Source: Amoeboradix gromovi X-113
Taxonomy: Eukaryota > Fungi > Sanchytriomycota
Length of the DNA stretch: 5,356 nucleotides
NCBI GenBank assembly: GCA_018985225.1
Contig: JADGIF010000667.1
Span: 1 to 5,356, forward strand
Direction of reading: 5' to 3'
Shown here: positions 1 to 4,635 of the stretch, piece after piece
How the letters are laid out: each line of letters opens with the position of its first letter
Position numbering within the stretch: position 1 is the first letter of the stretch
The notes under the pieces: generated by a model
Told to the model about the DNA's origin: nothing
Seen by the model: only the letters and a program-made list of their open reading frames with translations
The model's database searches: none
Position numbers and translations under genes: made by a program

Positions 1-123
1 GTGGACAGAGATGTGAATGCATGTTTTAATAATCTTCAAGTGATAGATAGTTTGCTAGCGAATGGTGAGAGACCAGGTTGGCAACAAAGGATCACTGACA
101 AAGTAGTTTCGCCTATTGCCTAG
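1..123 (+). CDS. 3' end (partial, runs off the window) of a probable Fanzor/TnpB-family RuvC nuclease, Fanzor1-like C-terminus
   Basis: Frame +1 from base 1 reads VDRDVNACFNNLQVIDSLLANGERPGWQQRITDKVVSPIA* (TAG 121-123). DRDVNAxxN matches the TnpB/Fanzor RuvC-III catalytic motif (RDxNAxxN). The downstream helix followed by G-E-R-P resembles Fanzor1 C-termini. The context is eukaryotic. Only 40 codons are visible. Confidence 0.75.
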   Translation: MDRDVNACFNNLQVIDSLLANGERPGWQQRITDKVVSPIA

Positions 124-222
124 GTGAAGAAATATGGGACACTACTGTGAAAACTTCAACTGGGTAAATCTCGTCACCCGCTTTTTACCCCTAGTCTAGT
201 TTTTACAGAGCATGTCCCAAAT
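64..222 (+). ncRNA. Putative Fanzor omegaRNA scaffold overlapping and following the nuclease stop codon (boundaries approximate)
   Basis: Hairpin 108-115/121-128 (TTCGCCTA/TAGGTGAA, one G-U). Long interrupted stem: 135-141/213-219 (TGGGACA/TGTCCCA), 145-155/198-208 (CTGTGAAAACT/AGTTTTTACAG, one G-U) and 162-168/184-190 (GGGTAAA/TTTACCC). Loop bases 169-178 are complementary to 64-72. The location matches where TnpB/Fanzor guide scaffolds are encoded. Confidence 0.55.
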
Positions 223-943
223 GATAAGAAAGAAAGTTAACCAGTTGTTTCGAAAGGACTTCAAAAAAATACGGATGAGAATTCATCGAAATTGCCACCT
301 GTAGCTCTACCTACTGAAAAGAAGTCCGATTCAGCTTTCAAAGATCCAAAAAAAAAGATAACAAAGAGATTGAAATACATCGAGAATGAAGATCGAGATA
401 AAATACGCTTAATGGATATGGTGCTAGACAGGAAGATCTTAAAAGTTGCTGTTAATTATTTTGTAGTTTTAGGCATTATTTCTGTGATTGCGATGTCGTT
501 GGGACTCCTTGGAATTTTTACTCAAAGATCTTTTGATACAGTTTCTTTGGATACAAGAAGCACTAACTCTATCGACTCTCTAGGTATCCAAGTTAGGGAA
601 TTTGGCTTGTTTACGAGCTGGTCAGACTTTACATCCAACTGCTGCTGTATGCTGTCAAAATCAAGTGAATTAGCTGGTATTGAATACTGGAGGTGCCGGG
701 AAACGGAAATATCAGATTTTAAATACAAAGTTCTTAAGATTTATTTAGGTTCTTCGTCGAGTATCCGCAGATAGTACAGGAAAAAAAGTCGATGGATATG
801 CAATCCGCCCATTTTGCGGTAGATTCTTCATTCAACATGCAGACCCATATTTTAAATCAGACGGGTCAGTCGCCATCGGGACTGGATATAATGATACCAC
901 AACTGCAGGACCTGATTATCAGGCGATGCTTAACTTATGGTAA
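223..943 (+). pseudogene. Uncharacterised single-pass membrane protein with Cys-rich C-terminal region; 5' end missing or uncertain (possibly interrupted by the element, or a short gene starting at ATG 412)
   Basis: Frame +1 is open from 241 to 729 (charged region, then hydrophobic VAVNYFVVLGIISVIAMSLGLLGIF, then WSDFTSNCCC...EYWRC). Removing a 19-nt GT-AG intron (730-748) continues it as VLRRVSADSTGKKVDGYAIRPFCGRFFIQHADPYFKSDGSVAIGTGYNDTTTAGPDYQAMLNLW* (TAA 941-943). The ORF-track start at 292 is TTG. There is no in-frame ATG before 412 and an in-frame TAA lies at 238-240. Confidence 0.5.
730..748 (+). other. Predicted 19-nt spliceosomal intron
   Basis: GTTCTTAAGATTTATTTAG: GT...TAG and AT-rich. 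Removal joins the frame +1 ORF to a 64-codon open frame +2 segment. Its size matches the RPB5 intron. Confidence 0.6.
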
Positions 944-2161: not shown

Positions 2162-2630
2162 TAATAAATTTTGAATTCTACTCTTTTGGACTTATTGTTA
2201 AAACCTCTGGTTTTTCTAAAATCAACAATTTCCACAGATAAACTAAATATCACTGTGTAACAATGGCTGCTCACGCTTTCATATCATTGAGAGGGATGAA
2301 AAAGACATGCATTTATATCACTGGGAAACTTTTGTTTCACTAATCTCTTCCCTTCTATTTGGGCGATAATTACGTTTTAGACCATTTCTAAGTCTAGAAG
2401 AGCGCATTTCGTATCGCTTATTGATTGCTTTAGATTGTCATATTATGACTAAGAATACTCAGTGACACTTGTCATTTATAAGAAAAATCAATAGTCGAGT
2501 TTTTTATCCAGCTCCAAAAATTTATTAAAAGGAACTATCGGAGTAACAACTTTCATTAAGCCAAGATAAGGAGTTTATTCAATCGGAATGCTCAACTGTA
2601 TTTAACATAATCGTGTTGTTACAAAGGAGC

Positions 2631-3265
2631 ATGTCGGATGCTGTACGCCAATTTCGAATTCACAAAACTGTATTTGAGATGCTAAAAGACAGAGGATACA
2701 TTCTAAGCAAGGCAGAACTAGACATGACATATGAACAGTTTGCAGAGAAATATGTAGTGAATAACACTGCTAACAGATCGCAGTTGCACCTGATTTGTGC
2801 GAAGAGGAATAAACCCGAGCAACAAATTTATGTTGTTTACGCAGAGGAGGAGAGCGTTGGTGTAAAAAACATAAGACTTTATTGTGAAAAGATGATTAGT
2901 AACCATATTGAGAGAGGTATACTAATTGTACAAAAGCAGTTAACACCTAGTGCCAAAAAGATTGTAGCTCAAATGAGTCCAAAATACTTGTTGGAGGTTT
3001 TCTTGGAAAGTGAATTAATAGTGAACATAACTAAACATATTTTGGTTCCACAGCATAACATTTTGGAAGACAAAGAGAAACAAAGCTTATTGGATAGATA
3101 GTAATTTTTTAATAATGTAGTAAGCTTAAGGATACACAATTACCGCGAATACAGCAAAACGATCCAGTGGCTAGATATTACGGACTGATCAGGGGGCAAG
3201 TGGTGAAAATATGTAGACCCTCTGAGACTGCTGGTAGATATGTTACTTACCGTATCTGTGTATGA
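2631..3265 (+). CDS. RPB5: DNA-directed RNA polymerases I, II and III shared subunit RPABC1/Rpb5, 204 aa; exons 2631-3100 and 3121-3265
   Basis: [23 protein letters not shown]...TPSAKK...[21 protein letters not shown]. After the intron it reads [48 protein letters not shown] (TGA 3263-3265), the canonical Rpb5 C-terminus. The start is ATG 2631 rather than GTG 2613. Confidence 0.97.
3101..3120 (+). other. 20-nt spliceosomal intron in RPB5 (phase 2)
   Basis: GTAATTTTTTAATAATGTAG. Removal gives TA|T (Tyr) and restores the conserved [16 protein letters not shown] without a gap. Confidence 0.93.
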
Positions 3266-3769: not shown

Positions 3770-4039
3770 ATCAATTTGAATCTTAATTCACGCTAACTTC
3801 TTCCCAAATCTTGAGCATACATAAATCAAGTTTATTGAAAATTTCAACTGCTTTCTGAAATTAGTTAAATATTCGCGTTTAATTGTCCTACATATCAATT
3901 ATCTTTAAAATAAGATCTGACTTGCACGTTTAACCTCAATCAAAGCATCGCTGGTAACGTAAGTTATGTTCACGGATGATGCCATGATACATAACAATCA
4001 ATGGCGTAACATTGGCTGCGATTGCTCGCACCCCTTGCT

Positions 4040-4047
4040 TTGATTGG
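4040..4047. promoter_or_regulatory. Inverted CCAAT box (TTGATTGG) upstream of CBM18 gene 2
   Basis: Identical 8-mer and similar spacing to the one upstream of the paralog. A second ATTGG lies at 4011-4015. Confidence 0.4.
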
Positions 4048-4086
4048 TTGTTAAATAGCACCCTGAAGACCTTCTCCACTCGAGAC

Positions 4087-4635
4087 ATGTTTTATTTGAT
4101 ATCTGCCGTTATTTTTGCTCAAAACTGTGGTGCAGGTATTGGTTTTTGCCCCACAATCCAATGCTGCAGTCAGTACGGCTTTTGTGGTACTACTGCCGCG
4201 CATTGTGGCACAGGCTGTCAGTCTGCGTTTGGAATGTGTGGTTATCCAATTCCGACATATTCTGTCTGCCCTACAAGATACACAACAGATGGAACCTGTG
4301 GACCAGATGTCGCTTGTAATCCTGGGTATTGTTGTTCTACATATGGATTTTGTGGTAAATCAAATAACCACTGTGTGAGAAATTGCTACAACCAGTGCAC
4401 GGGGCAACCTCCAATTACATTGTGTACTGCTACAAGTACACAATTATTCACCAGTACTTACGCAGCAACAACTACTTTGGCACTTGGCACAACAACAACT
4501 ACCTTGGCTGCTAGTACAACAACAGTTCCTGTTTCAGAAACGACTGCTGCAGCATCACAGGTACAAACCGCTGAAGCCAGCGAGTTGGAAACCGGTTTTG
4601 AAAACGATGAGTTAATTGATCTAAATCTAGAGTAA
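4087..4635 (+). CDS. Secreted chitin-binding protein with two hevein-like (CBM18) domains and a Thr/Ala-rich tail, 182 aa; paralog of 1670-2161
   Basis: ATG 4087 gives MFYLISAVIFA-QNCGAG, colinear with the paralog start (the ORF-track start 4012 is TTG). CCSQYGFCG and CCSTYGFCG signatures are present and all 18 Cys align with the paralog. AATAAA at 4634-4639. Confidence 0.93.
   Translation: MFYLISAVIFAQNCGAGIGFCPTIQCCSQYGFCGTTAAHCGTGCQSAFGMCGYPIPTYSVCPTRYTTDGTCGPDVACNPGYCCSTYGFCGKSNNHCVRNCYNQCTGQPPITLCTATSTQLFTSTYAATTTLALGTTTTTLAASTTTVPVSETTAAASQVQTAEASELETGFENDELIDLNLE

Follow-up and report, generated by a model that had tools for sequence, protein, structure and literature searches.

The 3' end of a predicted Fanzor1-type gene in Amoeboradix gromovi is most likely the right end of a deleted, non-autonomous transposon copy

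The described element most similar to the one reported here is Spu-1 of Spizellomyces punctatus, a single-ORF element of ~2 kb with inverted repeats of ~30 nt that encodes SpuFz1 (PDB 8GKH, 9CEY). A conserved CA is found upstream of its 5' inverted repeat, the TAM of SpuFz1 is CATA, and 134 'ghost' Spu-1 loci in S. punctatus carry inverted-repeat pairs and an omegaRNA without a Fanzor ORF (Saito et al. 2023, PMC10432273). That study is the precedent for ghost loci, for the position of the omegaRNA and for a CA/CATA TAM. A second point of comparison is the TnpB/omegaRNA system of IS200/IS605 elements (ISDra2; PDB 8H1J, 8BF8), in which the gene for the guide RNA shares sequence both with the 3' end of the nuclease gene and with the element's right end, and a conserved motif adjoins the left end. 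We found no publication on Fanzors in Amoeboradix in the literature.

The window, by which we mean the whole stretch of 5,356 nt analysed here, corresponds to contig C953 of the A. gromovi assembly from its first base on (G000:C953:1-5356). We assigned the following features to it.

1 to 120, forward strand: last 40 codons of a predicted Fanzor1-type ORF, its 5' side cut by the contig end (translation and alignment of relatives)
107 to 129, forward strand: small predicted hairpin across the stop codon (MFE fold and consensus fold of 33 copies), with pairs that never vary
121 to 123, forward strand: stop codon TAG of this ORF, invariant across 33 aligned copies
124 to 219, forward strand: 96-nt structured non-coding segment, candidate omegaRNA scaffold by its position and by analogy with SpuFz1
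135 to 219, forward strand: long imperfect predicted hairpin, TGGGACAC... paired with ...ATGTCCCA, with 25 predicted pairs and 0 compensatory changes; the inner arm resembles the left inverted repeat
191 to 219, forward strand: right terminal inverted repeat of 29 nt, exact reverse complement of the left end TGGGACATGCTCTGTAAAAACTAGAC... (100% over 29 nt)
220 to 240, forward strand: unique 3' flank, different in all copies, which would be the guide segment of an omegaRNA in the Fanzor/TnpB model
1670 to 2161 and 4012 to 4635: two ORFs on either side of the Rpb5 gene, each with two chitin-recognition (PF00187) repeats
2613 to 3101: Rpb5 gene

Frame 1 of bases 1-123 reads VDRDVNACFNNLQVIDSLLANGERPGWQQRITDKVVSPIA*, starting with VDRDVNACFNN and ending with SPIA before the TAG at 121-123, exactly as the earlier note had translated it. 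Because the window begins at contig base 1, the frame is truncated on its 5' side by the assembly and not by biology. The DRD of RuvC-III occupies codons 2-4. The longer motif DRDVNA (window codons 2-7) aligns to DRDENA of ISDra2 TnpB, and the second Asp of DRD (bases 10-12) falls on the catalytic D361 in a profile alignment to 8BF8/8H1J (E 5e-6), in agreement with the note, which had described the RuvC-III Asp as intact. The window copy differs from the family consensus at seven positions. One of them is a G-to-T change at base 26 (G26T), private to this copy, which turns the consensus CCNN into CFNN and thereby places a Phe instead of a Cys beside the catalytic motif. The note had read CFNN as a divergent counterpart of ARNI; CFNN is indeed present, but it reflects this private change, the family consensus being CCNN.

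A Pfam scan of the 40-aa window peptide alone gave no match, the peptide being too short. Better evidence on the superfamily came from longer copies in the same genome. C184 (= L029), which is 97% identical to the window and extends upstream, is a 529-bp contig consisting of a single open frame, ...VIYYGDGSYKH...PEFRTSKLCYSCHG...RQCTHCDVVVDRDVNACCNN..., and C465 reads ...RLRQCTHCDVVVDRDVNA in the same frame. Directly upstream of the RuvC-III motif both of these 94-100% identical copies encode a zinc ribbon CxxC...CxxC (LCYSCHG...RQCTHC) and the RuvC-II Glu, which C184 has in the context PEFRTSK. The zinc-ribbon cysteines in alignment A4 and the Glu column are conserved to at least 90%. Across the alignment of eight longer relatives, conservation extends to DPG(K), GDGS, PEFxTSK and all four cysteines, and D-R-D-x-N is invariant in the alignment of these with the window. 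RuvC-I is found in full-length relatives (VCVDPG in P0001, IDPGK in P0006) and is absent from the deleted ghost form described below. The earlier note had named the absence of such motifs upstream as a refutation of its reading; RuvC-II and the zinc finger were recovered in copies of the same family, and RuvC-I in the full-length relatives.

Against a curated cut-off of 26.3 bits for PF07282 (Cas12f1-like TNB), the C184 fragment scored 33.4 bits, P0001 35.9 bits and the C363 ORF 33.2 bits. The profile of the clade matched the solved ISDra2 TnpB at E 5e-6 over the zinc-ribbon and RuvC-III segment. A phmmer search of P0001 against PDB sequences gave no Fanzor or TnpB match; the relationship was apparent only with the family profile and in the fold search. 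Since C184 passes the PF07282 cut-off and D-R-D-x-N is invariant, we take the RuvC-III motif in the window to be real homology and not chance. The sequence comparisons support the note's interpretation of bases 1-123 as the C-terminus of a Fanzor-type (TnpB-superfamily) gene with its RuvC-III Asp, in a compact eukaryote.

An exhaustive HMMER search with P0001 among 1.84 billion representatives returned 82 matches at E <= 0.001, 11 of them at E <= 1e-30. A word-based search of 5.8 billion proteins found only two, both from the A. gromovi genome itself; a protein encoded on C1184 is listed in EukProt as EP00835_Amoeboradix_gromovi_P001751. Among full-length proteins, P0006/P0085, 606 aa long and from two JGI metagenomes, is closest to the window subfamily, with 65% identity to the C184 C-terminus and 43% to the N-terminus of the family. 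An AlphaFold model of P0006 (mean pLDDT 80.6, pTM 0.77) was compared with solved structures, as the note had suggested, and the best matches were with Fanzor1 proteins: SpuFz1 (9CEY, 8GKH; E 6.5e-17 to 4e-16, TM 0.66-0.67), followed by PpFz (9CF1; E 5e-14, TM 0.57) and GtFz1 (9CER; E 1.5e-11, TM 0.52). Matches to the Mimivirus Fanzor2 (9B0L; E 1e-5, TM 0.28-0.34) and to ISDra2 TnpB (8H1J; E 2e-5, TM 0.23-0.33) were weak. The SpuFz1 match spans the whole chain at a sequence identity of only 14-15%. As judged from this predicted fold of a full-length relative, and not from the window's own gene, the window family belongs to a small divergent clade of Fanzor1. A Fanzor2/IS607-type assignment was rejected in view of the weak fold match (TM 0.28-0.34) and the lack of any DNA or motif match to the genome's own Fanzor2 family. 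A giant-virus origin of the window subfamily was likewise unsupported: IMG/VR contained no match to the family protein fragment or to its 22-nt left end, and the relative P0007 lies among ordinary eukaryotic genes. The contig of a further relative, P0023, was ambiguous as to giant-virus origin.

The first ~220 bases of the window are repeated in the 10.5-Mb assembly at 88-97% identity, with at least 40 scored places and 122 candidates, while the window sequence beyond base ~230 is not repeated there. In all 33 collected copies the similarity stops exactly at ...ATGTCCCA (base 219); their last bases are ...TGTCCCA, after which the flanks all differ. On the upstream side, 31 of the 33 right-end copies are truncated by contig ends, and the repeat therefore breaks the assembly. 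In the public contigs of the source sample the summed word depth was ~6,000-17,000 over bases 1-268 vs 40.9 on the unique flank, which is compatible with hundreds of copies, although summed depth is not equal to copy number. None of these public contigs bridges the sequence upstream of C953 base 1.

The other end of the family was found to the left of the C184 start. Position 1 of C184 was rejected as the left end, as homology runs 105 bp further, to TGGGACA: 17-18 independent copies stay similar over these 105 bp and then stop at TGGGACATGCTCTGTAAAAACTAGAC...; the boundary is sharp at the left in 18 copies and at the right in 33. Since this left end and window bases 191-219 are exact reverse complements, we identify the family as a transposon whose terminal inverted repeats are 29 nt long. 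Immediately outside the left end, the bases A-A-C-A at -6 to -3 occur in 15, 17, 15 and 18 of 18 independent copies, respectively; -2 is variable, -1 is A in 12/18, and the sequence is random further out. By analogy with the described systems, AACA(N)A is a candidate TAM or target-site motif. In the right flank, N-A-T-(G) was weakly preferred at positions +2 to +4, and no target-site duplication was seen in two complete miniatures (C644 and C963). The metagenome relative L085 represents a full element: it measures ~1.95 kb, contains a single ORF and is bounded by inverted ends of its own, 27 nt long and starting TGAGACA....

In its architecture the A. gromovi family thus resembles Spu-1, with a full element of ~2 kb and one ORF in the relative, inverted repeats of ~30 nt, a CA-containing motif outside the 5' inverted repeat (CATA TAM in Spu-1, AACA-N-A here), no transposase between the inverted repeats, and the predicted whole-chain fold of P0006 (TM 0.67 to SpuFz1). 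A neighbouring transposase, which the earlier note had proposed to look for, was not seen, as has likewise been reported for Spu-1 in S. punctatus, and no recombinase adjoined any of the window-family copies examined. It differs from Spu-1 in the sequence of the terminal repeats, in the low identity to SpuFz1 and the missing phmmer match, and in its host, which belongs to a different fungal lineage; the clade is small, with the 82 matches at E <= 0.001 given above. With TnpB of IS200/IS605 the family shares the homologous zinc-ribbon and RuvC-III segment, the conserved motif adjoining the left end and, if the role proposed below is correct, a guide-RNA gene that overlaps both the nuclease gene, at its 3' end, and the right end of the element. 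Unlike the IS200/IS605 elements, it is eukaryotic, has a much larger REC, carries true terminal inverted repeats instead of subterminal hairpins and lacks TnpA, and the whole-chain fold match to ISDra2 TnpB is weak. Spu-1-like Fanzor1 elements with ghost derivatives are a known kind, to which the A. gromovi family adds a member; the window locus itself is most likely a relic.

Internal deletions characterise most members of this family that were long enough to judge. We built a composite of overlapping contigs of 793 bp, used as a coordinate frame only, in which window base 1 is position 575. In its frame ~49 N-terminal codons (M...KCNYTYQT) are fused in frame to ~140 C-terminal codons (SMKYDD...SPIA). 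C709 shares with this composite the left end and the first 49 codons, then reads on through 199 more open codons, which can be aligned to the N-terminal REC region in P0006 and P0001. As C709 continues into this full-length-type N-terminus, the 793-bp form derives from a full-length Fanzor1 element by internal deletion. C644 is a complete miniature of 393 bp, C963 a complete miniature of ~223 bp with 31-nt inverted ends, and C387, C1096 and C44 are further deletion variants. Among left-end copies long enough to judge, ~8 are internally deleted or broken off, and only C709 and probably C526, which is identical to the full-length-type N-terminus for 54 residues until the contig end, are of the full-length type. 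The judged ghosts, of ~0.2-0.8 kb, have lost the middle of the gene including RuvC-I, WED and REC and therefore cannot cut DNA themselves. The middle part of the family (RuvC-I region) was not present on any contig at high identity, and no complete full-length gene with window-family ends was found in the assembly. Over the 40 tail codons, the 33 copies carry 61 nonsynonymous and 25 synonymous changes from the consensus, 1 stop and 2 frame-disturbing indels, about what neutral decay after insertion would be expected to give.

We therefore regard window bases 1-219 as very probably the right-end module of a Fanzor1-type terminal-inverted-repeat transposon, in a copy that is most likely a deleted, non-autonomous ghost of ~0.8 kb or shorter. 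As the sequence upstream of base 1 is missing, the ghost status of this copy is a frequency argument and not an observation. The uncharacterised programmable nuclease that the earlier note had envisaged at this locus is not borne out, given that most judged copies are ghosts without RuvC-I, WED and REC and that the tail evolves neutrally. Like the ghost Spu-1 loci, the ghosts of A. gromovi are non-autonomous, retain the inverted repeats at both ends as well as the 3' non-coding segment, and are commoner than full-length copies. Whereas Spu-1 ghosts lose the whole ORF, the main A. gromovi form retains an in-frame remnant of ~190 codons (the first 49 codons together with those for RuvC-II, the zinc ribbon and RuvC-III). 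Other differences are the coexistence of several deletion variants and of recombinants involving a sister family, and a far higher density per genome, the 10.5 Mb containing ~1100 candidate places of the sister family in addition to the window family.

Two other readings of the window copy were weighed against this ghost. In the first, which follows the earlier note, the copy would belong to a full-length Fanzor1 gene that may be active and of which the 3' end was assembled but the remaining ~1.7 kb was not. The tail is open and its DRD intact, C709 combines the same left end with 248 open codons of full-length-type N-terminus up to the contig end, C526 is exact over the first 54 residues, and the truncation of 31/33 right-end copies by contig ends points to near-identical longer upstream sequence in many copies. 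However, deleted forms outnumber full-length-type ones by ~4 to 1 among the judged copies, the RuvC-I middle is on no contig at high identity, and both the neutral evolution of the tail and the private Cys-to-Phe change next to the catalytic motif speak against it. We consider this reading unlikely.

The window might also carry a solo or recombinant right end, i.e. the 219-bp module joined to unrelated or distantly related upstream sequence by 5' truncation or inter-family recombination. Such junctions exist in the genome. C1129 (L006:6647-7138) and C1019:22880-23158 carry two copies that are 98% identical to each other. Their last 226 bp are 96% identical to the window family, yet the preceding ~200 bp have only ~40% protein-level identity to the family and contain many stops. 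A young right-end module joined to the remains of an old gene in this way suggests that the end module is homogenised by gene conversion or recombination. In the C963 miniature (L012:6526-6748; cf. L006:~6190-6646), the left end of the sister ghost family, TGGGACATCAAATATAAAAACTGGAC..., is joined to the window module from window base 62 on, which by its sequence makes it a hybrid of two ghost families. Five contigs are moreover broken within 3 bases of window position 1. Since C184, C465, C825 and C936 run on upstream with 91-99% identity, most copies are uncut at that position and branching of the assembly graph can also give breaks there, we regard this origin of the window copy as highly improbable.

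The 96 nt from the stop to base 219 are conserved as well as the coding part (mean column identity 92% over window bases 95-219 in the 33 copies), and the fold of window bases 1-225 was better than all 200 shuffles (z = -3.27). No compensatory changes in the predicted hairpins were seen among the 33 copies, which are ~95% identical; covariation is absent because the copies are too similar. The hairpins could equally be a DNA-level inverted-repeat structure instead of an RNA. Position and fold of bases 124-219 are compatible with an omegaRNA scaffold by analogy, as SpuFz1 encodes its guide-RNA scaffold there. If the family works as Spu-1/SpuFz1 and TnpB elements do, transcription of the 3' segment would yield an omegaRNA with the flank after base 219 as guide, a putative full-length Fanzor1 would cut matching sites adjoining the TAM in trans, and such cutting might help the element family to persist. 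The ghosts might then be maintained as omegaRNA-only guide loci which program a few intact Fanzor1 proteins in trans, with the end module homogenised by recombination or gene conversion, as the young modules on old or foreign upstream DNA in C1129/C1019 and C963 suggest, and the ~190-codon remnant perhaps expressed as a truncated protein. We consider this extension improbable. If it were so, the putative guide repertoire would number tens to hundreds for the window family and about a thousand with the sister family.

Further Fanzor genes are present elsewhere in the genome. Two long Fanzor1 ORFs belong to another subfamily: C1184 (L031:1184-3289) encodes P0001, uninterrupted over 734 aa, and C363 (L032:1460-3538, minus strand) encodes P0002, 685 aa, whose genomic frame contains stops close to its end. 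DPG, PEFxTSK, the zinc ribbon and DRDVN are present in both proteins. TGGGACA-type inverted repeats were not found around these two genes. Yet another Fanzor1 subfamily is represented on C750 (L039:1580-2793), where an N-terminus and RuvC-I region 44-56% identical to P0006 run to the contig end with one in-frame TAG. The sister Fanzor1 ghost family, with related ends, accounts for the ~1100 candidate places. A small and highly divergent Fanzor1 clade is thus represented in A. gromovi, with inverted repeats like those of Spu-1, ghosts and a candidate TAM of the AACA type. For a genome of 10.5 Mb, so high a density of Fanzor-derived elements is unusual and would make A. gromovi a good natural system in which to study the role of ORF-less omegaRNA loci. 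Useful leads for genome editing lie in the intact relatives, namely P0001 (C1184) and the metagenomic P0006/P0085, and in the defined ends of the family, and not in the truncated window locus.

A Fanzor2/IS607-type family, distinct from these, is also present in the genome, and at least 150 PF07282 matches were scored for it. This family shares with the window family the PF07282 superfamily and hundreds of decayed copies; unlike the window family it has a DRDHMAARNI-type ending and an association with a serine recombinase, and it shows no DNA similarity to window bases 1-219. On C542 (L023:1417-3169, minus strand) we observed an open Fanzor2-type ORF of 569 aa with a 152-aa ORF directly before it, which by its sequence looks like an IS607-type serine recombinase. 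This locus is likely an autonomous source of the hundreds of Fanzor2 relics. C11 (L026) had been considered as a full-length element with the window's end and was rejected, as it contains a decayed Fanzor2 copy and a separate end fragment ~550 bp away.

Outside the element end, the window has the appearance of ordinary eukaryotic nuclear DNA, with genes for Rpb5, two chitin-binding proteins, a BRCT protein and a DUF6787 protein and a GC content of 35-45%. At 1104-1328 it contains a decayed fragment 68-76% identical to DNA flanking Fanzor2/IS607-type relics (L015, L016, L018, L024 and L025), probably an old mini-element of that family in the spacer before a chitin-binding gene, as far as its sequence tells. 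Finally, a contig of 341 nt from a sediment metagenome (run X2) contained window bases 1-74 with one difference and reached 267 nt further upstream, which indicates the presence of the same element family, or of A. gromovi itself, in that environmental sample.
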